A stretch of 64,000 nucleotides of DNA from contig JAQFVV010000007.1 of assembly GCA_028023455.1 (NCBI GenBank), positions 19,778,001 to 19,842,000 on the forward strand, in the 5' to 3' direction. The position numbers and the translations under genes are program-made. Below are positions 14,001 through 60,900 of this stretch, piece after piece (the stretch's first letter is position 1; every line of letters begins with the position of its first letter). The stretch is from Epiperipatus broadwayi (lineage: Eukaryota > Animalia > Onychophora). Below the pieces are notes generated by a model, which worked only from the letters and a program-made list of their open reading frames with translations, had not been told where the DNA came from and did no database searches.

Positions 14001-16311
14001 TGCCCTCTTAGATAATTTTTACTTAGACAAATTTATTTATTTTTTATAAATCCATTTGTAATTTTAACTTTCTGAGTAATGTTTGTGAACACCCTTGGCT
14101 TTGTGGACTTAAAAAATATATTATATTTGTGATTTGCTATTATTTGATTTCCTGTGAAATAAATATTTGTTTTTCTTATTAGAAATTTCTTATAATCATT
14201 TTTCCACATCATCCACTCATTAACCAGAAATCTAAATAATTGTAAGAGTATAATAACTTATCTTAAATGTTTTGTTTTGAGAGTACATGAGCATTGAAAT
14301 TAATATAAAAATCACTTTAGTATTAGGATTACATCTAAGAAAGATGTATTTTGCTTAATAAAAATTGCAATTGAGCATTATTATTTGAAGTCACTTCAGC
14401 CAATTTAGTTTGCTTATTAAAAGATCATCAGGTTTATTTATTATAAAATTATCTCCCATAAATATTAAACTATATGTGTTATGCCATAATTAATTTAGAT
14501 TATGAAAGGACTTAGTTAAAATTTAAAAGATATTTAAGTAGATTTATTCTATGATATTTAGAATGCTTATAAAATCTCTTACTCATCCTTAATATCTGAA
14601 TGTCATCCTAGGAATTTATTATTTATCTTATTCTGAATTAAGAGATCATGTTGTGTTTTACTTTAAATTAATATTATTAATATAATTGTGATAAGACATT
14701 AACTTAGGGGTAAGTATATGTTTTAATTTTATTTACTAGGGTTTCATTGTATGTTGAATAGATCTTAAAAGTCAACGGTAATTTATTTTATGATTTAAAT
14801 CAATCATATTATCGTGGGATACTCTAATTTGTTTTATGGACCATATTATTTAATTTATTTTGCTAAAAAAGAAATTATGTTTGTAAAGATTAATCTTTTG
14901 TGGCAAAGATTTAAGATAACACTTCCTTATTTTATGAAATTAAATATGTTTTATCTGATCATAGCAATGAGATACTTAAGATATGAATAAGAAAGATGTA
15001 ATGGTAGTAGATGTTTGTAAGAGAAGGATTTTAAATATGACCTTAATGGTCTATGCTTGCAATACCAGGAGTCTAGTATTTGTACTAGAATGAGTCAAGA
15101 GTTCTTCATTTGTTTAAATATTGCTTTGTATTTTAATGATACTTTATTGTAATTGCTTACCTCTGTTTCTCATTTTTTTGTGGCCTACAGCATTTTTCCT
15201 AAACTTGCTGAGCTTGGCTTATAATATATTTCTTTATTAACCGCAATTTACTAGGTTACAATTTGGCCTGCTCAACATGTTGCCCATCAATCGACTGGAA
15301 GTACTGATCGATTGTCCTGGATACACATTGTGGATATTTCATCAATTTGTTTCTTTATTTGTGGTGGATATATTGCTAATATTTTTTTCAAGATATCTAT
15401 TAAAATTAACTTTTTTATTTTGGGACTGAGTTGCCTCAAAATCTGCACAAGTGGATTCCAAAAGTTTAAAACCTGATTTGTTTAGACAATTTAAAATAGA
15501 TCATGGAAAATCATTATTTACTGAAACAAATAATGTCTTTGTATTCCATCTGCCTGAGTGAAATGTTCTTCTTTTCTGACAATGCACATTAGCTTAAGTC
15601 TATTTATTTTAAAACTTAACAACCTTCTCACTTTTTATTTTCACATCTCTATTGGCTGCCATAGAAATTAAAATCACAATAAATATATAAGTATTGAAAA
15701 TTATATTCTCTAAGACTAATTAGAATAGAAAAATCCAACTGCATTAAAAAGTGTTTGAACATTTATTTAGATATTATTTATCAGAATAGAGATTACATTA
15801 TTTGAATAATGCAAAACTCTATATTTGATAATTATCTCTTTTATAAATTTGAACATCTAACAGTCAATATGAAATTCTTTTTAATTATATGTTCTTTGTG
15901 CTTCATTTCTATATAATTATTATTATCAGACTGCAAGGAAAAAATTAAACTTTCTTTTCATATAAAGTTTTCATTATTGAGTATGATTAGTTTTTACAAC
16001 TAAAAAGATTCTATTCTATATTGTATTAGTTTACTTTTCCTATACAATTGTAATTGATATAATTGTTTAAAAGTACTGAATATGAAAATCTTAACAATAA
16101 AAAGTTTTATTATAGTATGCTGAGCAGTGATCTTACTCTTAATATTAAATCATTAAACATCACATGATCACTATTCTTTATGCTTATAAAAGCTGTTTAC
16201 ACAAAGGCAAAATGCAATATACAATAGCACCACCCAGTACAAGCCAGAGTAAGCAATGGATGCAGAAAGTTTTATGCATAAAATCCATTTCTAGTGCCTA
16301 CTCATCCAATA

Positions 16312-16354
16312 TCTCCAGACTAGTATCTGGTTTGTGGCTTTTATCAGTGAGAAA
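16312..16354 (-). ncRNA. degenerate type I hammerhead motif (family A, left arm)
   Basis: Minus strand reads TTCTCA CTGATAA AAGCCACAAACCA GATAC TA GTC TGGAGA; the family consensus is TTCTCA CTGATGA AAGC CACAA GCYA GAAAC TA GTC TGGGAA. Confidence 0.55.
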
Positions 16355-16506
16355 CCTTGGATTTGGGAGCACTTCACCTAGATCATAGTATCTAATATGT
16401 TTTCATTTTTGACTCAAAGCTTTAATTAGCTAAAAAGATAAAAGGTTGCTACTAGATGGTTGCATTAGATTCTAATACCTAGGTGCAGTGCTATAAGATC
16501 CAATGC

Positions 16507-16550
16507 TCCTCACTGATGAAAGCCACAAGCTAAAAATTAAACAGAAAATG
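16507..16550 (+). ncRNA. degenerate type I hammerhead motif (family A, right arm)
   Basis: CTCCTCA CTGATGA AAGC CACAA GCTA AAAA; the 5' core is intact and the 3' half is decayed. Confidence 0.5.
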
Positions 16551-17149
16551 TTTGATGAGTAGGCACTAGATAGAAATTTTATAAACAAATCTTCCTGCAT
16601 CCATTGATTACCCTGACTTGCACTGACTGGTGCCAGTGCATAGTATGAGTTTTACCTCTGTGTTGATCTTAACATCATACTCATAGTAATGACTAATGAA
16701 TTGTGGGTAAAAGATATAATGTAAACTGTATACCAATAAGTTACATGGCTGACTTTGTAGAGAGTGGAAAATAGAACTTTTTTTATTTATCAAGTTAGCA
16801 GAGTTTCCTTTATCTTGCATTTAGAATTATTTTTTTGATACAAGCAATGCTAGTCGATGTATGCTAAAATGTGTGACTGAATCATTTTCAAAATACAAAA
16901 TAATTCCAAATTGCTATAAAGCCAAAATAAATTACACAATTTTAACTGAATTGCATTAAAATTTTAGCCCAACTACAACTCATCCTATTCAACAGAATTA
17001 TAACTATGTGTATAAAAACTGAAAAAGAAGAAAAGGTAACAATGTAAGAGTTGTTTAATACAAGATATACCACTCTAAATAACTGATAAATGCAATATTT
17101 ATTTAAAGCTAAATTCTAAATTTGCAAATATACTAATGTCTTTAGCAAA

Positions 17150-37520: not shown

Positions 37521-38228
37521 TCTAAAATCTTTGTGCCTTTCAATGACTGTTGAAATTTCTTTTTACTTTATTACAGGATACAATTTCAACAAAAATGTTT
37601 TTAATAAGCAATTCAAGCTAATTCATGAATCTATGTGTCTTGTGCAACAATTATCCAGAAGAAATCAAAATTGCACATGCTTCTCATCTCTACATGTATT
37701 TGGATTTCATAAGCATGCAATCAAGCTCAAGTAAATATATAAAATATATACAAAAATACTTTCAGCCCCTTTAATGCATTTGTAATTATTCACATACAAA
37801 GAGCCATGTGGCTTGCATGTTATTCCATAACATTTGACAATAAGAAATGCAATGCACTCAAAAGAAATAACTAAGAATGGTTCAATTCATATCTATATTC
37901 TCTCATTTTTTTATCCAAGAACATCATGACCAAAACTTGGCAATCAACAATCTGTCTCAGTTGTGCTCTCTAATAGCTTAGACCTTTATTTCCATTAACA
38001 TTTCCCATCAGATTTCATTTTTGAAAATAAATACCTAAATTCTTTTTCAGTTTAGTCATCGTGATTGTATTATAATATGACACTCCTCAAATTTGAATTA
38101 CAATTCATTGAAGTTAACAACTTATCATTACAGCTGTAGTTTCATTAAACTTTTCCTATGTAACATAAATTTATTCTAGCAAATATATATTCAAATTTAA
38201 ATGTATTAACTATAATAAACCTAATGTA

Positions 38229-38572
38229 ATTAGTAGGAACTTGAACTCAGACTTTCAATCTCTTTACAACTATACACTCATTCTTTTACAACTAATACAA
38301 ATGACCACATAATGTGAAAAAAATAAATGATCTCCAATATACATACTTCATGCTGAACCGCACATATATGTGGTCATATGTATAGGTTGTTAAGATTGAG
38401 TGCGTAGTTGTAAAGAGCTTTAAAGTCTGAGTTCAAGTTTCTTCTAATTATTTTATTTGAGTAATGGGTCAGCATGAAATATGTATATTGGAGATCGTTT
38501 ATCTTTTTCACATGTATGTGGTCATGTGTATCAATTGTGTAAGATTGAGTGCATAGTTGAAAACCTGAGTTT
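38229..38572. mobile_element. fold-back family B, rearranged copy
   Basis: Inverted termini at 38229-38290 and 38397-38448. The left arm stops in hammerhead stem II (CATGCTGAACC), and an extra right-arm piece GGGTCAGCATGAAATATGTATATTGGAG lies at about 38466. Confidence 0.75.
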
Positions 38573-41043: not shown

Positions 41044-41290
41044 TATCACATGATCACCATTTCTTATGGTTGCTTTTAACTGTTATTAAGACAGGCAAAA
41101 CTCTCTATACGTATTGCCACTCAGTGCAAGCCAGAGTAACCAATGGATGCCAGAAGGGATGTGCATATAATCCCCATCTAGTGCCTACTCATCCAATATT
41201 CCCAGACTAGTTTCTGGCTTGACCAGAAACTAGTCTGCTCTGGCTTGCACTGAGTGGCAATACATATAGAGAGTTTTGCCTGTTTTAATA
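41044..41290. mobile_element. fold-back family A, internally deleted/rearranged copy
   Basis: ~55-bp IR (41085-41136 / 41238-41290) plus a perfect 15-bp hairpin CAGACTAGTTTCTGG-cttga-CCAGAAACTAGTCTG (41203-41237). Confidence 0.8.
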
Positions 41291-42069
41291 TCATTTCATT
41301 AGAGATTGTTACGATAATACTATTTTTGATTTCCCCATGATTGTAGGAGGTATTGAACGATTATTTTTTGATATTAAAGCAAAAAATTCAAGTTCTCTTG
41401 CTCAAATTAAACTGACTTAAGTATATTATATATTCAAAGTAAAATCGTTAAATCTCTTGGTGTAAAAAATATAAGTGTATTTGCTGTTGCTAAAGTTAAA
41501 AAAATATTCAAGTATTTGAGTTATTAATCGACATAATGAAAATTATAAAATTAGTTCCAATATTTTGTTTTATTATATATACAATCATCAGATAAAATAA
41601 TATTTAATAAAAAAACACAAATTAATGTCATAAAAGACCTATAAATAAGAACTATAGCTAGCTTATGATGTGACTATCATACCCTGGACCATTCGGAAGG
41701 ACAATCGTGCCATAAACTACTCTGTACCTTTTATTAGTTTATTGATGTGTATATATATATAGTAGAGTAAACTATGCCATTATTACACCTAATATAAAGT
41801 ATGTAGTTAAATGTTAATTTTATAAACAAAGTACACCTTTAACACATTAATCTCATAATAATAATGTAACAACCAAACGTTTTTTTTTACTCGGAGTTCA
41901 TAAGTAGTTTAAGCACCGGAAGTGACAGAGTAGGGATTTTGAGTTTTACAGTCTACAGCATTATCATTGCCCTAAACCACACAGGGCAACATCATAATCA
42001 TTGCTATCATTACAATTTAATGTTTAATATTTGAATACAAGCATAATTTATATACTTTGAGTTTAGATG

Positions 42070-42675
42070 TAATTATAAAGGATTTGAACACAGACTTTCA
42101 AGCTCCCTTCGATTATCCACTCTATCTCATACAACTGATAGATATCACACACATGTGAAAAAGATAAATGGTCACCAATATATTAATTTTGGGCTGATCC
42201 AGCACTCATTAGTTGGACCAGATCATCATCTTCCACACACATATATAATCAGTTTTCCGTTTATATTAAGATAAAAAATCTTCAAACTTTAATAGACATA
42301 ATTCAATGTACTTCACCCTCCAATTCTTCAGACATCCTGCCCATCCCACATGGACATAACAATAACACTCTCATCAATAAGATATTTGAGCATTCTATCA
42401 TCAGATATGAATGGCTGAAGAGTTGAAGGGTGAATAGATTCAAACCTGTCCATTAAAGTTTGAAGATATTCTATCTTAATCTGAGTACTGAGTATATATG
42501 TGTGGGAGAGATTATGATCTCAGCCAAATAAGGAGTGCTAGTTCAGTATAAAATGCATATATTAGAGATCATTTCTCTTTTTCATATGTGTGTGGGTCAT
42601 TTATATCAGTTGTATAAGATAGAATGGATAGTTGAAGGGAGCTTGAAAGTTTGTGTTCAAATTCTCTATAATTAA
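42070..42675. mobile_element. fold-back family B, complete unit: ~270-bp inverted arms with decayed hammerheads
   Basis: TTTGAACACAGACTTTCAAGCTCCC... mirrors ...GGGAGCTTGAAAGTTTGTGTTCAAA; hammerhead remnants at 42174-42218(-) and about 42520-42568(+). Confidence 0.85.
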
Positions 42676-42949
42676 ATTTAGTATTCAATATTGATAAATC
42701 CATTTATTTATTTACTTCAATACTGTTGGTTCTCTGATGCTTCACATTATTTTGCATATTAAACCAAGATTTTTTTTATTTTTCTCTTTCTATCATTTTT
42801 TCTTCATAAACTATCTCAACAACTCCAGATCAAACTCTTATTATTTCTCATAATTCTAAAATATCGTACATTTATAATGCTGAGACATTCTTTTGCTTTA
42901 TTTCATGTTATTTTCTTATAGTATGCTAGTGTCATATGATATGATTGGC

Positions 42950-43900: not shown

Positions 43901-44134
43901 TTAAATATATGTTGTCTATATATAACTATATCAAGCTATTTAAAGTAGAATCATCTTTTTTAAATCGTTGCTATGTAGTTGTAAATGAGAGCTGTTGAAG
44001 TTTAATAATATTTCTGTAGTGTAATTTTCTCTACACCACTCTCACGCAAGATAGAGAATGTATTTTATCTGCTTTTAACATCTTGGAGGAGGGGTCCTAA
44101 AAATATGATCAAAAATGTGGAAAAGATGTATGAG

Positions 44135-44181
44135 CTCCGAGATGCACATTTCGTGCTGAACCAGCACTCATCAGTTGTTCC
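44135..44181 (-). ncRNA. type I hammerhead motif, family B-related, intact catalytic core
   Basis: Minus strand GGAACAA CTGATGA GTGCTG GTT CAGCAC GAAA TGTGCATC TCGGAG: perfect 6-bp stem II, 3-bp stem III, AUC triplet; stem I is mismatched in this copy. Confidence 0.7.
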
Positions 44182-44554
44182 AAATAACGTTCTTTTGCAT
44201 ATATCATTATTATTATTCAATTGAAGTCCATTGTTTTAACAATGCGTGTTTGATCGTTTTTTTATATATATTTCCTCCAGTGACCATTATTTGTTAGATA
44301 TTATACATATATATGCATTGAATATTACATATATTATTCTTTGGTATATTTCGGGGCATTATCAATAGAGGATTTACGCTTCAAAAATGTAGATTACCGT
44401 TTATGATCGTATATTTGAAAATTTCAATTATTTGCTTCTACAATCGCTCATTCGCTGATCTCACCAATAAATAACGATGATGATGTGGTTTGCATTATTA
44501 CAAATCAAGCTGTTTGCTAACGTTGAAAAGTATTGTTTTTTGTTTTTTTTTAAG

Positions 44555-44650
44555 TGTCATAGCATTGGCCGGGACGCGAACCCGCAACCCGGGCAACTGC
44601 CGGCTAGTGCAAGGCAGTCGCGCTGACCTCTCGGCCACCAATGCAAGACA
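44555..44650 (-). repeat. tRNA-Gly-derived cassette with extended terminal stem
   Basis: Minus strand GCATTGG TGGCCGAGAGGTCAGCGCG ACTGCC TTGCACTAGCC GGCAGT TGCCCGGGTTGCGGGTTCGCGTCCCGG CCAATGC: Gly-type acceptor and T arm, enlarged anticodon loop, duplicated CGGGTT; not a canonical tRNA. Confidence 0.65.
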
Positions 44651-45788
44651 AGTATTGCTTTTTAAATATCAAATGTTTGTAGAATTATACTAATAAAATA
44701 CAGTATTTATATAATATTCTTATAAAGTAAATATTGAGGGTGAACATAATTTTAATAACATTTGTAATTAATTATAAATGATTATGTAATTCTTTATTTA
44801 ATTATTATATTTTACAAGGTTATTAATAATTAGGATTCAAAAAATATTTAATTTGCTTCTTATGAAATATATACGACTTATGAATAAAGTGGCCAATATA
44901 ATATTTTTTGGTATATAATATAGTAATTTATAATATTTTTTGCTTTTAATCAGTTATATTAGAAGTAAAAACCTTTAAAATTTAATATAATATGATAAAT
45001 GAAAAAACTTTCAATGATTATTTTTTTTAATTAGTTGTGCTTTTATAAAGCAGTTTTTTTTTTTATTATTTTATTTTAAATGTTAATGAAAACCCTTTTT
45101 TGTCGTCTTTGTTTATTTTACCTACATAATTTTTATTATTGTTAAATGAATATGATTTTGCTTTATAATTTTGAATATTATGAATCAATGCTTTTTAAAT
45201 TAAATGCCAAATAAAATAAAGGAAAAAATAATACCGCTCATTAATATATATGTTTATACGTAATGTAAGAATAATATTTATTATTATTTTTATAATAAAA
45301 TATCAGGCTATGTATTTAAAAATTAAAATTTATAATACCTTCGCTTTACTAAATTTTGCGAGTGTCGTCATCCGTTACCTTTTTTTTTTTGTATTCCGTA
45401 TAAACTAATTGCACCACGCAATGATAGAATAATGGTGGCATGAGTTAAAGATTTTTGAATTGAGTCTCAACCTATCACTTCTAGTGTCTGAACTGAGGCT
45501 CAACTTGTCATTTCTAATGTCTGAACATTTGTTGACCTTCTGTGCAACCAACCTTTGGTTATCTTTTTATATTTGCTTTTTTAAAAATTACTGTAACAAA
45601 TAGCCCTTATTTTGAATGGAATGCTACTTATTGTAAATTTTCTTTATAATATACATCTGGTTTTTTATTCAAGAACTTCTGACTGGAGTGATCCTATGAG
45701 TATCTAAGTTCACTGTCAAAACCCTCAGTTTAGTTTTTTTAAAGTCTATAAACTACACTATTGAGCTAAAAATGAATTAATTAAAGTC

Positions 45789-45927
45789 GATTTGAACACA
45801 GATTTTCAAGCTCCCCACAGTCATCCACTCTATTCAATATAACCCATACATATGACCACATACAAGTGCAAAAAATAAATGATCACCAATATACATATTT
45901 CATGCTGAACCAGTACTTATCGATATA

Positions 45928-45958
<31 letters not shown>

Positions 45959-46555
45959 AATAAAATGTCCGTTAATTAAAAAACAATATTGTAATTATAA
46001 ATGAAATAATAAATTTAACGGTTTACAAACTATTACAAACAATCCTTAAATCCGCGCAGAAGTACTTTCGGTTAATTTGTTAAACCTGCTTCAACTGCCA
46101 TTAAATTAAAAAAAAAAAAAGGCAGTTGAGGCAGGTTTAAGAAATTAACCGAAAGTACTTCTGCGGATTTAAGGAATGTTTGTAATAGTTTGTAAACTGT
46201 TAAATTTATTATTTCAATTATATATATATATATATAACATAATATTGGCATCATCAAAAACTTTGAGCATTCCATCATCAGATTTTCAGTGATGTGGATG
46301 GCTGAAGAGTTGGAGAGTGGAGAGGACTAAAGCCTGTCCAATAAAGTATGTAGATTTGCTATCTTAATATGAACCAAGCACTGATTATAAATATGTGTGG
46401 GAGATGATGATCTGGATCAACTGATGAGTGCTGTTTGAGTATAAAATACATATATTGGTGATCATTTATCTTTTTTACATATATGTGGTCATGTGTATCA
46501 GTTACATTTGATAGAATAGGTGATTGTGGGGAGCTTGAAAGACTGAGTTCAAATC
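45789..46555. mobile_element. fold-back family B copy with a nested hairpin element
   Basis: Left arm 45789-45920, spacer plus right arm 46240-46555; hammerhead 5' core GGATCAA CTGATGA GTGCTG at 46414-46433(+). Confidence 0.8.
45996..46222. mobile_element. ~230-bp MITE-like fold-back (~100-bp arms, 21-nt A-rich loop)
   Basis: The arms differ at only about 5 visible positions; loop 46100-46120; flanked by (GT)n and (TA)n. Confidence 0.8.
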
Positions 46556-47068
46556 CCTTTAATTATATCTAGGTTATTTATATACATTACACTTGTATTT
46601 CAATATTCATTACTAAGATAGTAGTTACTTGTTTGTGAGTGTCTGAAGATGGTGATGATTTTCCTGAAAACACTTTATAATTACAAATATATCTTATATT
46701 TTAATTCTTTAATACTTTTATTAAAACTCTTAGCACAAATAATTTTTTAGTGAAATAAAATTGAACTTAAATTTAAGTTTATTAAAATAGAAAAAGTGTA
46801 CATTTTAACATATTTAAATGTAGTCAGTTTTGATCATGTCTTTATTTTAATTAGCCAAGGTCTTATTGAGGCAGTTGTGATGCTCTTAATTAATTTCTTA
46901 TCAGATCATTGATATATAGTGTTTCACCTGATTAATGTATTCTATCATATCCCTTAGACCAATTTAATTGGACCAGTTTTTTTTTTTTTAAATATAGCAT
47001 ATTCCACATTGTGTACTAAAAATTGTAATGAGAATAATGTGTGACATACACAGCGAGAGAGAAGAATA

Positions 47069-49593: not shown

Positions 49594-49883
49594 TGGGCTG
49601 CTCACCAACATGCATTAGTCAGCGTGGTGAGTTTATTGGCTTTTTACCTCTGAGTTTAAGATCAAGAAACACCATGGTCTTTCTTCTCAGTGCCTGATAA
49701 GGCAGAATGAATGTTTGTGTAAATGATAAATATTTTTCCAATACATATATACAATTATGACAGACAAAAATAAAGCACGGCCCTTAATTCCCAGGAGGCT
49801 GTAAAGTCACCAACCAAGGGAGCGGTTGGTGGTCGAAGGCAGAGGGTGCTAAGAATCCCCTGATTGCGGACCCAGGCTGCCAT

Positions 49884-52715
49884 TTGATGATGACTTTTTA
49901 TTTAGGTTCTTACAACTGCAGATCACATTCAAGTGAAGGAAGATTGCAAGAATTAGAAGAAGAACTGTCTTATATTAAATGGGACATTATTGGACTTTGT
50001 GAAGTTAGAAGAAAAGGAGAAGAAACAATTGATTTAAAAAGTGGACATATACTCTATTATAAAGGCACATGTATTGGAAATACAAGTGGAGTAGGATTCA
50101 TTATAAATAAAAGGTGGAAGAACAATATTGTGGAGATTGATGGTGTATCGGACAGAGTGGCAAGATTAGTTATACAACTTAATAGCAGATACCAAATGCA
50201 GATAATTCAGGTTTATGCCCCAACAAGTTCTCATAGTGATGAAGTAGTAGAAGATTTTTATATGGATGTACAAAAGGCTTTTGATCAGAGTAAACAACAT
50301 TTTAAAATTGTTATGGGAGACTTTAATGCTAGAATTGGTAGACAAATGAAAGATGAAATTGCTGTAGGTAATTTTGGTTATGGTAATAGAAATGAGAGAG
50401 GACATAGACTTGTGGAGTTTGCAGAAAAAGAAAAACTTTATATTATGAATTCATTTTTTGAGAAAAATGTTAAAAGGAAATGGACATGGAAGCATCCAAA
50501 TGAAGGTACAGCAGAATTGGATTATATTTTGACTAACAGAAAATACATATTTCAAGATTGTAATGTTCTTAATAAATTTAACACAGGAAGTGATCATCAA
50601 TTAGTAAGGTGTAAGTTACGTGTTAATGTAAAACTAGAAAGACAAAAATTATTAAGAAAAACAATATTTACAGTTGATATTCCTAATTTTCAGAAACATT
50701 CTAATGAATTTAAATTAGAACTTACAAATAGGTTTCAAGTGTTAGGAGATTTTGAACATGATACAGATTTGAATGAAATTAATATGAAAATAACTGATAC
50801 ACTTTTAAAAACTGCAACAAACATAGCTGGTAGAAAAAAGCAGCAATTGACTAATAAAATTTCTACTGAGACTAGAGAATTTATAAAGAAAAGAAGGAAT
50901 ATGAAGATATACAAAAATGATGTATTAAGAAGAATTGAATATCTCGAATTTTGTAAAATGGTACGGAAAAGAGTTGAAAATGATATAAGAAAGTATAACT
51001 GTGAAATAGCAAGGAAAGCTGTAGAAGAAAATAAAAGTCTCAAAAATGTTAAACAACATTTTGGTATTGGTAGGAAATTTATATCTGCAATAAGAAAAAA
51101 AGATGGAATTATTACTAAAAAGAGAGATGACATCATGAAATTGGTAGAAGATTTTTATCAAGAATTATATGGTAATAAAGAACAAGTACCTCCTATATCT
51201 ATTACATCTTCCGAATTGCCCAGAATTTTAAATGAAGAAGTGAGACATGAAATTAAGTGTATGAAGAAAGGAAAGGCTCCAGGAAATGATGGACTTATAA
51301 TTGATATATTAAAAGAAGCTGGTGAAGAAATAGAAACAATTTTAGCAAAGTTATATACCAAATGTCTAAATGATAAAGATGTACCAGAAGATTGGAAGAA
51401 TGCAGTAATAATATTAATATTTAAAAAAGGTGATAAAGAAGATATTAGAAATTACAGACCTATCAGCCTTTTATCAGTTTTATATAAAATTTTTACCAAG
51501 ATAATTTCAACTCGTCTACAGAGAACTTTGGATTTCCACCAACCAAGAGAACAAGCTGGATTTAAAAGTGGTTTTAGTACAATAGATCATATCCAGGTAT
51601 TGAGAGAAGTCATAGAAAGGACAAACGAATATGAGTTGTCATTATGTTTTGGATTTGTAGATTATAAAAAGGCATTCGATTCTATACACATTTCTTCAGT
51701 GATTAAAGCATTGGATCAACAAGGTATAGATCCAGGATATTTTCATATTTTAAAGAATATTTATAAAAATGCAACAGCAACAATTAGATTACATTATGAT
51801 ACTGGAAAAATCAACATTGAGAAAGGTGTAAGACAAGGTGACTCCATATCTCCAAAACTCTTTACAGCAGTGCTGCAAGAAGTATTTTGTGGATTAAAAT
51901 GGGAAACTAAAGGAGTGAAAATAAATGGAGAGTATTTAAGTCATTTAGATTTCGCAGATGATGTAGTTGTTTTTGCAAATAATGCTTCAGGGCTGCAGGA
52001 AATGTTGCAGGAGTTAGCAGATGAAAGTAGAAAAGTAGGACTAAAGATAAATGTTAAAAAGACTAAAGTAATGTTTAATCGATTTGCTCAAAATATGAAA
52101 ATAAAGATTGATTATGAAGAATTAGAAGAAGTTAACAGTTACAAATACCTTGGTCAGATTATTAATACAGATGGAAACATAATGGAGGAAATTAATCATA
52201 GTATTAAACTTGGTTGGAGTGCTTTTGGTAGAAATAACTTGATACTAAAAGGAAATATGCCTATGTGTTTGAAAAGAATGGTTTTTAACAAATGTGTTTT
52301 ACCAGTTCTTACTTATGGATCTGAGACTTGGACACTTAATAGAAGAGCAATACAGAGACTTCACACCACTCAAAGGAGTATGGAGAGATGTATGTTGGGA
52401 GTAACAAGAAGAGATCGAAAACACAATGTATGGGTAAGACAACAAACAGGTGTTACTGACCTTATTGAAAAAATTAAAAGATTGAAATGGAGTTGGGCTG
52501 GACATATTGCTAGAAGAGATGATAATAGATGGACAGTTGAAATTTTAAACTGGATTCCAAGAGATTGTAAAAGACCCAGAAAGAGACCACATGTGAGATG
52601 GATGGATGAAATAAGAAAATGTGCAGGGTTGTTGTGGAGAAGAGAAGCTAAAGATCGGAGAAGATGGATTAAACTTGGAGAGACCTTCATCCTGCAGTGG
52701 ATTGATAATGGTTGA
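49884..52715 (+). CDS. RTE ORF: APE endonuclease plus reverse transcriptase (943 aa)
   Basis: EN motifs SYNCRS, DIIGLCEVRR, GDFNARIG, LDYIL, SDH; RT motifs YRPISLL, DYKKAFDSI, GVRQGDSISP, FADD, YKYLG; RTE-type C-terminus KWSWAGHIARR; no stops. Confidence 0.97.
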   Translation: MMMTFYLGSYNCRSHSSEGRLQELEEELSYIKWDIIGLCEVRRKGEETIDLKSGHILYYKGTCIGNTSGVGFIINKRWKNNIVEIDGVSDRVARLVIQLNSRYQMQIIQVYAPTSSHSDEVVEDFYMDVQKAFDQSKQHFKIVMGDFNARIGRQMKDEIAVGNFGYGNRNERGHRLVEFAEKEKLYIMNSFFEKNVKRKWTWKHPNEGTAELDYILTNRKYIFQDCNVLNKFNTGSDHQLVRCKLRVNVKLERQKLLRKTIFTVDIPNFQKHSNEFKLELTNRFQVLGDFEHDTDLNEINMKITDTLLKTATNIAGRKKQQLTNKISTETREFIKKRRNMKIYKNDVLRRIEYLEFCKMVRKRVENDIRKYNCEIARKAVEENKSLKNVKQHFGIGRKFISAIRKKDGIITKKRDDIMKLVEDFYQELYGNKEQVPPISITSSELPRILNEEVRHEIKCMKKGKAPGNDGLIIDILKEAGEEIETILAKLYTKCLNDKDVPEDWKNAVIILIFKKGDKEDIRNYRPISLLSVLYKIFTKIISTRLQRTLDFHQPREQAGFKSGFSTIDHIQVLREVIERTNEYELSLCFGFVDYKKAFDSIHISSVIKALDQQGIDPGYFHILKNIYKNATATIRLHYDTGKINIEKGVRQGDSISPKLFTAVLQEVFCGLKWETKGVKINGEYLSHLDFADDVVVFANNASGLQEMLQELADESRKVGLKINVKKTKVMFNRFAQNMKIKIDYEELEEVNSYKYLGQIINTDGNIMEEINHSIKLGWSAFGRNNLILKGNMPMCLKRMVFNKCVLPVLTYGSETWTLNRRAIQRLHTTQRSMERCMLGVTRRDRKHNVWVRQQTGVTDLIEKIKRLKWSWAGHIARRDDNRWTVEILNWIPRDCKRPRKRPHVRWMDEIRKCAGLLWRREAKDRRRWIKLGETFILQWIDNG

Positions 52716-58679: not shown

Positions 58680-60599
58680 TGTCTGTGGAATGGTGTACAC
58701 TTGCACATATACATATGTGCTTTTTACGTTCTTTTATTCATTCAATAATAAAAAAAAACATGAAAAACAGAAAACAAAATTTCATGATCAATCACAGAAT
58801 TAATAATACAAAAAAGCACAAAATTATGCAAAATAAAAGGTAAATTTTCACCTTATTTCCTAGGATTATAACAACAAATATCGGTAAGCTTACCTACATA
58901 TGTAAATTTTATGTGACTTTCTTGTTTCCCCATAGAATGTTCATATCTTTTGGTAGCAAAATTAATCTTGTCCTTTTGTGGATTTTAGGCTAACTTTCAG
59001 TAATAGGCAATCCATGTATTTATAGTTCACAAGAACCTTTACTATCTTTTTCATTAGGTATTTATATTGAATTCCATTTTGGCAAATTGTTAATCAGATA
59101 GCAGACAGATGGCAACAGAAATAACACAATCACATGGCTAATACAGATCTGGCATATTTCTGTTTTTCTACTCCATGATATTTATTATTTGGCAATTAAT
59201 ATTATATGTTTCACATATATATATATTTCAGTGAACACAGAATACTTACTCCCAATAATTACCTATTTTTTTTATCAAAAATCTCCTTAATTCTTTCAAA
59301 CTCCATGTAATTTAAGATTTCCCTTTAGTGTTCTGTTAAAGTCTCAATTTTTCTCTGCAAAAGTTCTTTTCTTCTCCCCTTCCCTCCAAAGAATATAAAT
59401 TCAACAAAAATAGCAGCCAAAGAGACATCTGTATGAAGCAAAAGTATACATTTTTTAACAATATACTTCCCTTACATAAACAAAATATGCTGACTCATCA
59501 TTTTGTCTCTCTTTTTATCTTGTACAAAAAATAACAGATAAAGAAAAATTCCCATTTTTTTTATCATGCAATCTTTAAATAACATATAATTATAAACTTT
59601 TTAATAAGGTTCAATCACTTGATTAGAGTACAAACAAAAGAAAAATAGTATATATTGAATCAATATCAGATTTATTTTACATTGATAAAAAAATTTTTTA
59701 CTAATTAATCCATTATTGGGTCTATACATACTTTTACCCTTTATATATAAAAAACACTAAAATAATTTTATCATTAATAACATTCCACATACCATTTAAT
59801 AAATTTTTTATATAATTACTCATAATAATTAACAAAATGTAGTAAATGAATTAGTGATATTTTTTTCTTTATATTTTATAAAGTTTAAATAAAATAAAGT
59901 TAAAAAAATATTACATCTTAAAAAAAAATATTAATGTTAAAAAAAATTTTTTTGTATCACAATAAAACAAAATGCCAAAATAAAATATAATTTATATCCT
60001 CTGTGTACAAACCTTTAATCTATAGACACATTTGTAATTACTTCAAGCCCTTTTTATTTTCTCTGGCTAAGATTTATTTATATTAAAATATTTTACACCT
60101 TGTGAAGAGGTTCAAATCTTAATCCCCATCACAATATTTATAATAAGTTAATCTTCTTACATATTTGAAATTAATTAGACTTGTTTGTTTATTCCCATGT
60201 TAAAAGAAAGATTTAATATAAAGCTGTAAAAAGTATTTTAACTTCAAACAAAAATGGTATAAGATTTTACTTTTTTAAAGAGATTTAATAAACACCTTTT
60301 TTACAATAATAACGTAGTGAGTTATTTATATAACATTATGTTTTAATCTGTAGCAAACACTAGGATCACCCACTGTACATGTGCCATGTGCTATAAACTA
60401 ATAAACAATTTTAAATAATACTCTTCATTCCAAGCATAAGATAAAGTCTTTTGAAAAGATATAATGAATCCATTCTACCTTTTTAACCTAAACTTCTATG
60501 TATAGACAAAACTTAAACATTTGAAAAAGTGCATGAAAATATTAATTAATCACTTTAAATTCCATAGCTATGTTAATAATAATATAATAAATAGAAAGA

Positions 60600-60900
60600 T
60601 TTAAACTCAGGACTTTTTCAGTCTATTCATCCTCCACTCCATCTCAAACAATGAATAGACATAATTACACATATAAAAAAAGATAGATAATATTCAATAT
60701 ATAAATATTTTATGCATATCCAGCACTGATGAGTTGGGCCACATCATAATCTCCCACACATATATACAGTCAGTGCTCAGTTTATATTAAGATAGAAAAT
60801 TTGAAAACTTTAATGGACAGGCTTTAATCTTCTCACCCTTCCAATTATTCAGTTATTCATTTCATTGAAAAACTGATAATGGAATATTCAAGCCACACAA
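60600..60900 (-). mobile_element. fold-back family B, single arm plus spacer
   Basis: Matches 42090-42400 (CCAGCACT..AGTTGG, CTCCCACACATATATA, CTTTAATGGACAGG). Confidence 0.7.

Follow-up and report, generated by a model that had tools for sequence, protein, structure and literature searches.

The window analysed here is a 64,000-nucleotide stretch of the genome of the onychophoran Epiperipatus broadwayi (GenBank assembly GCA_028023455.1, contig JAQFVV010000007.1, positions 19,778,001 to 19,842,000 of the forward strand), and the subject is a non-coding inverted-repeat element at window positions 42019-42680, a member of what is here called family B, which carries the relic of a hammerhead ribozyme (HHR) in each of its two arms. 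The window has a GC content of about 28% and the source genome measures 5.6 Gb. The element is probably one old insertion, in head-to-head form, of a high-copy non-coding repeat that resembles the retrozymes without long terminal repeats (non-LTR retrozymes) and depends on Penelope-like elements (PLEs) for its mobility; it is of a known kind and not a new class.

The inverted repeat is about 660 bp long and starts about 45 bp further left than had been reported in an earlier description made from the letters alone (hereafter the sequence-only reading), which was right to call it an inverted repeat: window 42064-42680 matches its own reverse complement at 75% identity over 617 bp, and the paired arm segments match at 86% (42064-42153 with 42591-42680), 78% (42146-42263 with 42477-42594) and 83% (42265-42310 with 42435-42480). 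The predicted RNA fold of the element is one long hairpin (z = -18 against shuffles). Both arms can be placed on a repeat unit of about 476 bp, the family monomer, and the left side of the element (42019-42337, minus strand) aligns at 87% to this unit from position 201 through 476 and on to 46. The parts of the element are as follows.

42019-42063, minus strand: 45-bp 'tail' (monomer 46 to 1) beyond the point where arms usually stop; on the left arm only
42064-42337, minus strand: left, shorter arm, a 5'-truncated monomer (unit ~201-476) with its sense on the minus strand and its 3' end leftward
42160-42233, minus strand: left-arm hammerhead relic, core CTAATGA (G5 to A) and CAAAA (G12 to A); predicted inactive
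42338-42347, no strand: inner junction, the meeting point of both 5' ends, without foreign spacer
42348-42680, plus strand: right, longer arm (unit ~130-476), 3' end rightward, without tail; 81% identical to the unit consensus
42385-42406, plus strand: motif TTTGAGCATTCTATCATCAGAT, the 'conserved spacer' of the sequence-only reading; monomer ~167-188, inside the longer arm
42505-42578, plus strand: right-arm hammerhead relic, CTGATGA now ATAAGGA and G12 lost (TAAAA); predicted inactive

As had been described, the element lacks coding capacity, is non-autonomous and has one outward-facing degenerate hammerhead per arm. The supposed spacer between the arms turns out to be unit 130-188, that is, the extra part of the longer arm. 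Core bases are missing from both hammerheads of this copy, and the fold of the left-arm relic has lost the hammerhead architecture; judged by these changes both ribozymes are dead. The insertion is an old one, a fossil, which is what the sequence-only reading had suspected.

The replicating unit and its insertion marks

A genome-wide count of copies had been proposed for this family: a whole-genome search with the window element returned 9765 first-look candidates. The Rfam hammerhead models scored nothing. Loci were retrieved in two sets, 20 centred on an arm and 30 chosen through a perfect match to a 26-nt hammerhead core. Copies are arranged singly, in direct tandem with a period of ~460-474 bp (L015, L032, L046 and L040) or, most often, head-to-head. 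The 130 bp that lie between tandem arms are conserved and run on directly from the arm end and, for this reason, what replicates is a monomer of about 476 bp, AT-rich and without an open reading frame (ORF), and not the fold-back; the 343-bp arm was considered as a complete unit and ruled out by the same segment. Unit coordinates are those of a majority consensus of nine copies, which served only as a coordinate system. Identity to the query is 83-84% for single arms, as against 72-76% for full fold-backs. A reading of the unit as carrying A and B boxes for RNA polymerase III was judged unconvincing by eye.

The way in which copies lie next to each other is strongly skewed: neighbours no more than 150 bp apart comprise 36 head-to-head pairs, 1 tail-to-tail pair and 2 direct pairs, and an inverted partner stands at the 5' end in 15 of 26 loci that had not been selected as fold-backs. 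The 5' ends vary and are spread over the unit. The 3' ends are bimodal, with one group at unit 451-476/1-10 and another, about 45 bp away, at 31-50, and these two zones hold 78 of the 101 segment 3' ends; no poly(A) or microsatellite tail was found at the 3' ends of the family. A tail of 37-46 bp is present on exactly one arm in 22 of 25 fold-backs whose ends are canonical, on neither arm in 3 and on both arms in none. Target-site duplications (TSDs), a further check that had been proposed, are seen at the family level as flanking direct repeats of ~9-15 bp around the whole pair, with a score of 8 or more in 13 of the 25 fold-backs compared with 17% of mismatched controls (Mann-Whitney p = 9e-6). 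These insertion marks fit the PLE machinery, in agreement with the Penelope-type mobilisation that the sequence-only reading had put forward. One fold-back (L013:1450-1494) lies within a (TA)n microsatellite, consistent with the microsatellite bias reported for PLEs.

The layout of the window element, one arm from ~130 and one from ~176-204 with a total of ~610-650 bp, recurs in at least 14 loci among 40 scored candidates. When these 14 fold-backs are aligned at the centre, junction positions and sequences differ in every one, and in less biased samples the junction pairs are widely scattered (for example 19/409, 50/162, 288/292, 437/165 and 78/64). The arms meet with 0-7 bp of overlap or with small gaps, and the tail is found on the long arm in 4-5 loci, while about 8 have it on the short arm. 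Between loci, arm identities are 0.808 for long with long, 0.798 for short with short and 0.802 for long with short; these values are equal, therefore there is no arm-specific lineage. Within a locus the two arms are on average 0.835 identical, and up to 0.966 in one case (L002, with 21 common non-consensus changes and 9 private ones), and the subfamily markers match between both arms in every fold-back typed. Because the junctions vary, arm lineages are absent and markers agree within each locus, the fold-backs are independent events in which both arms come from the same kind of template. For the recurrent ~130/188 junction a microhomology hairpin was considered, and the only match, 4 bp of CCAT/ATGG, was unconvincing.

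These observations bear directly on the design that had been claimed for the family. An 'inverted-repeat counterpart of retrozymes' as a distinct architecture is not upheld, since the monomer is the unit, the junctions vary and there are no arm-specific lineages, and the analogy with ambisense viroid-like RNAs is unsupported, the two ribozymes being copies of the same sense-strand motif that insertion has put on opposite strands. The arrangement that the sequence-only reading had named as contrary to its own proposal, independent inverted pairs with variable junctions, is close to what was found; the difference is that the pairs derive from a short non-autonomous family and not from decayed full-length Penelope insertions.

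The hammerhead module

The genome-wide hammerhead consensus, ACCAA-CTGATGA-GTGCTG-GTT-CAGCAC-GAAA-TAYRTATA-TTGGW, agrees with the one earlier compiled by eye, with the correction that stem I is longer than the 5 bp first given: 5 bp are followed by a UGG bulge and then by another 7 bp. At the level of the family the motif has the sequence of a canonical type-I hammerhead with a 6-bp helix II (closing pair G10.1-C11.1), a helix III of 1-2 bp with a palindromic loop, and an extended helix I. A count across the genome gave 3857 exact matches to the 26-nt core and 0 to a reversed control; most of these exact cores belong not to family B but to a sister family with a unit of ~410 bp. CTGATGA and GAAA are kept in the family consensus and in 19 of 60 sampled family B copies. 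The sister family (L048-L077, for example L050:1328-1628 and L076:1000-1954) is younger, with 91-95% identity between copies and a period of ~406-414 bp; the two families have only the 82-bp hammerhead module in common, and in the sister family the helix III loop is UGCA, the cleavage site is UC and there are internal inverted segments.

In an alignment of 68 hammerhead modules (alignment A1), 89.8% of cells pair, compared with 28-56% when the partners are slid, and the paired fraction is 90% in helix II and 94.7% in the extended helix I. The covariation that had been called for as a check is present as two compensatory pairs in the extended helix I, 10-67 (GC in 40 modules, AU in 16) and 12-65 (UA in 54, CG in 7), and the centroid folds of two intact copies (L072 and L057) recover helices I and II. 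The helix III region reads GAAA-UA(CG)UA-UA and then UUGG; its loop dinucleotide is CA in 25, TG in 15 and CG in 5, and the C-G12 step is TG in 23, CA in 18 and CG in 12. These counts have the pattern of CpG decay, which implies that the ancestral loop would have been the palindrome UACGUA. Both CpG sites of the module (A1 columns 43-44 and 51-52) have mostly decayed to TpG or CpA and, because of this, it is suggested that the repeats of the family have, or once had, methylated cytosines in the germ line. Cleavage is predicted after A359 (U358-A359), and the 5' ends of insertions do not cluster at this site (unit 359/360).

Origin of the fold-backs

It is suggested that the PLE reverse transcriptase (RT)/GIY-YIG endonuclease makes each fold-back in a single retrotransposition event, in which two complementary DNAs from the same kind of template would converge and become linked at or close to their variable 5' ends, leaving both 3' ends and both ribozyme copies facing outward. 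Any action of the ribozyme would be in the sense RNA of source copies, where it would probably work as a dimer in multimeric transcripts, because helix III is minimal and has a palindromic loop; the potential of the insertion to form a hairpin would then be a by-product of the way it was made. The combination of one tail per pair, arms from the same template and variable abutment raises the further, tentative possibility that these are the footprint of a dimeric PLE enzyme that primes on both target strands and uses a different start site on each. If this is true, the family would offer direct structural evidence that PLEs mobilise animal retrozyme-like repeats, together with thousands of natural insertion products in which the mechanism of PLE integration can be studied. 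As a weaker addition, with more than half of the insertions able to form a hairpin, the family could seed its own silencing by small RNAs.

Genes for the PLE endonuclease are abundant in this genome. Matches to the GIY-YIG endonuclease number 10241 candidates with open frames of up to 901 aa, and the close inverted pairs among the matches listed are, by our count, in the (-,+) orientation in 20 of 20, the same geometry as in family B. One autonomous PLE array (G000:C12394:20942626-20950119) consists of an inverted truncated copy and three direct copies with a period of ~3135 bp (-,+,+,+).

Several points weigh against this origin. No ORF-bearing PLE with the 3' region or the hammerhead of family B was found, one PLE 3' flank having been read (L079), and that flank has no similarity to family B and no CUGANGA...GAAA motif. 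Of the 26 distinct loci picked through the hammerhead core, not one has a PLE ORF within 1.5 kb. At one locus (L078:3242-6287, minus strand; G000:C1:16357000-16365500) a frameshifted long interspersed nuclear element (LINE) with APE and RT regions has its ORF end about 40 bp before a sister-family hammerhead module. The window fold-back has no convincing TSD, its best score of 6 being the control median. The 5' ends cluster at unit ~130 and ~176-204, and the search behind the 14 look-alike fold-backs was one that gave preference to full-length matches with a fold-back query. The covariation in the hammerhead comes from two inherited changes and gives modest support. Finally, the Rfam hammerhead models gave no match at the gathering threshold or at E <= 10 in the window or in the loci with intact cores, where the only scores were sub-threshold microRNA (miRNA) hairpins caused by the palindromes. 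This blank is treated as a limit of the models, which expect a real helix III, and says little against the motif. Separately, ORFs beside the hammerheads of L055 and L078 that had been taken as candidate PLEs proved to be those of a degraded APE+RT LINE, and the ORFs of the window include no PLE, the only long one being that of a LINE.

The absence of an identified partner PLE in the one flank read leaves room for family B to be a dependant of a LINE, similar to a short interspersed nuclear element, with fold-backs arising through snap-back or template switching by the LINE RT. The degraded LINE that ends ~40 bp from the sister-family module in L078 speaks for such a relationship, as does the presence in the window, at 49788-52712 (plus strand), of an apparently intact LINE with an uninterrupted 975-aa ORF containing endonuclease/exonuclease/phosphatase and RVT_1 domains. 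However, the 3' ends of family B lack the poly(A) or microsatellite tail of such a dependant, while the pattern of two separate 3' ends at a distance of 45 bp, with a single tail in each fold-back, agrees with the PLE 'tail' (PMC11167929, PMC8557442). Pairs that stand head-to-head with a 3' end on both arms are typical of PLEs, and LINE twin priming does not typically give them; the (-,+) pairing is also that of the autonomous PLEs in this genome, and snap-back predicts a tail on both arms, which is seen in 0 of 25 fold-backs. A LINE origin stays live, if weaker, and is unlikely. The idea that the fold-back is itself mobile, a master inverted repeat transcribed from either strand and copied whole, draws on the same overall layout in at least 14 loci among the 40 scored and on the 'spacer' common to two window copies; against it, the junctions differ in position and sequence in 14 of 14 (the search that yielded these having favoured full-length fold-back matches) and are widely scattered in the less biased samples, the tail is on the long arm in some loci and on the short arm in others, the three kinds of arm comparison give equal identities between loci, and single or tandem monomers are better conserved than fold-backs (83-84% compared with 72-76% to the query). 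This idea is largely refuted and has a very small chance of being correct.

Two further explanations are each highly improbable. Long inverted arms, small size, high copy number and the lack of an ORF are what would be expected of a miniature inverted-repeat transposable element (MITE) or Foldback DNA transposon with long terminal inverted repeats and an incidental hammerhead, and MITEs also give weak miRNA-hairpin-like scores in Rfam, as seen here. Nevertheless, this is refuted by the features tested: the arms are also found alone and in direct tandem, they are unequal, with variable inner and fixed outer ends that are the mark of 5' truncation in reverse transcription, their outer ends differ by the 45-bp tail, the TSD varies in length (~9-15 bp), and the hammerhead has compensatory changes. 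The other explanation, that two independent insertions landed side by side in opposite directions or that a local inverted duplication took place, is made conceivable by how abundant and clustered the family is, with four copies within 23 kb of the window and several multi-copy loci. It is refuted at the family level by the 36 head-to-head neighbour pairs as against 1 tail-to-tail, by arms that abut, either overlapping by 0-7 bp or leaving small gaps, by TSDs that surround the pair and not each arm, and by the source-specific variants and subfamily markers that both arms carry in common; for the window copy it is not refuted directly, as its TSD is unrecognisable.

An annotation should treat elements of this type as complex insertions of a single PLE-dependent hammerhead repeat and place them neither in a new fold-back class nor among the MITEs; software built on the Rfam hammerhead models will overlook them. 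The family, with its 9765 first-look candidates, is also a large natural collection of insertion products of the PLE type made from a short template. The single tail of each pair, the common source of its arms and the variability of the junctions bear on how the tandem and inverted structures of PLEs are formed and on whether retrozymes use PLE enzymes, both of which are open in the literature.

Neighbouring copies and relation to known systems

The copies that the sequence-only reading listed elsewhere in the window (at 38229, 45789 and 60600, with a motif at 44135) are all related to the element at 42019-42680. As to their form, it was right about two of the supposed fold-backs, 38225-38561 and 45778-46607, and wrong about 60588-60885, which is a single arm.

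38225-38561, no strand: short rearranged fold-back of family B; minus-strand unit 333-473, then plus-strand 381-457 and 330-433
44115-44213, minus strand: isolated fragment of the hammerhead module, ~90 bp, with the best-preserved core in the window, CTGATGAGTGCTGGTTCAGCACGAAA
45778-46607, no strand: interrupted fold-back of family B; minus-strand arm 45778-45921 (unit 328-471) and plus-strand arm 46239-46607 (unit 144-476 and tail to 39)
60588-60885, minus strand: single 5'-truncated arm of family B, without inverted partner

The arms of the fold-back at 45778-46607 are kept apart by a (TG)n tract and a nested palindrome. This palindrome (45996-46222) is 227 bp long, near-perfect (arms of 60 nt at 95% and 48 nt at 94%) and unrelated to family B; it has a MITE-like look and a sub-threshold miRNA-precursor score (MIR5185, 55 bits compared with a cut-off of 101.7). 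Three of the window copies are spaced by 3.7-3.9 kb, and a tandem segmental duplication was considered; nothing outside the elements recurs at that spacing. A second inverted-repeat family in the window, family A (16155-16685), has no detectable sequence in common with family B, as the sequence-only reading had stated, and no BLAST similarity to the sister family either; by eye, CTGATGA-type motifs are present on both of its arms. Another inverted repeat at 41078-41296, with 59-nt arms that are 93% complementary and 101 nt apart, resembles part of the family A context (GCCAGAG...CTCTGGC), and a tRNA-like match at 44561-44644 (minus strand) is sub-threshold (26.5 bits, cut-off 29).

Compared with known systems, family B is like MITEs and Foldback elements in being small and non-coding with long, hairpin-forming inverted arms, and unlike them in that the outer ends are the 3' ends of retro-copies, the inner ends and TSD length vary, and the arms also occur alone or in tandem. 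The ribozyme is of the kind found in metazoan genomes and PLEs, where the helix III of type-I hammerheads is short and palindromic and the ribozymes work as dimers (Cervera and de la Pena 2014, PMC4209133); the minimal motifs published there were detected with RNAmotif descriptors (PMC4209133). Family B has the CUGAUGA...GAAA core, the 6-bp helix II and the helix III of 1-2 bp with a palindromic loop in common with these ribozymes and differs in a longer helix I (5 bp, UGG bulge, 7 bp) with compensatory changes.

The non-LTR retrozymes of metazoans consist of non-coding units of 150-450 bp, repeated in tandem and carrying a type-I hammerhead, and PLEs have been proposed as their mobilisers (Cervera and de la Pena 2020, PMC7229834), and a 2026 preprint argues that they are derivatives of PLEs (Li, Clavereau and Pollet, 10.64898/2026.07.22.740005). 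Family B resembles them in being non-coding, AT-rich and high-copy, with a type-I hammerhead, tandem monomers of a few hundred bp, TSDs of more than 4 bp and coexisting PLEs. It departs from them in its monomer of ~476 bp, slightly above the 150-450 bp range, and in that the sampled copies are mostly head-to-head and not in tandem arrays. Inverted pairs or a one-sided tail are not discussed in PMC7229834, where 'inverted' does not occur as a word, or in 10.64898/2026.07.22.740005, and a literature search that added 'head-to-head' found no such report.

For PLEs themselves, insertions have been described as 5'-truncated and often in partial tandem, often with an inverted 5'-truncated copy next to the 5' end, and as having a 30-40-bp tail on a single side and a hammerhead in the pseudo-long terminal repeat (Craig et al. 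2021, PMC8557442), and the one-ended tail has been called unique to PLEs (PMC11167929, PMC8557442). In vitro, the enzyme of an anole PLE cuts and extends both target strands, and reverse transcription starts at two adjacent internal sites whose interval is the tail (2024, PMC11167929). Family B lacks an ORF for RT or endonuclease and would thus be mobilised in trans. In its 5' truncation, partial tandems, adjoining inverted copy, one-ended tail and hammerhead within the repeat it is like a PLE insertion, with a tail of 37-46 bp compared with ~30-40 bp in PLEs.

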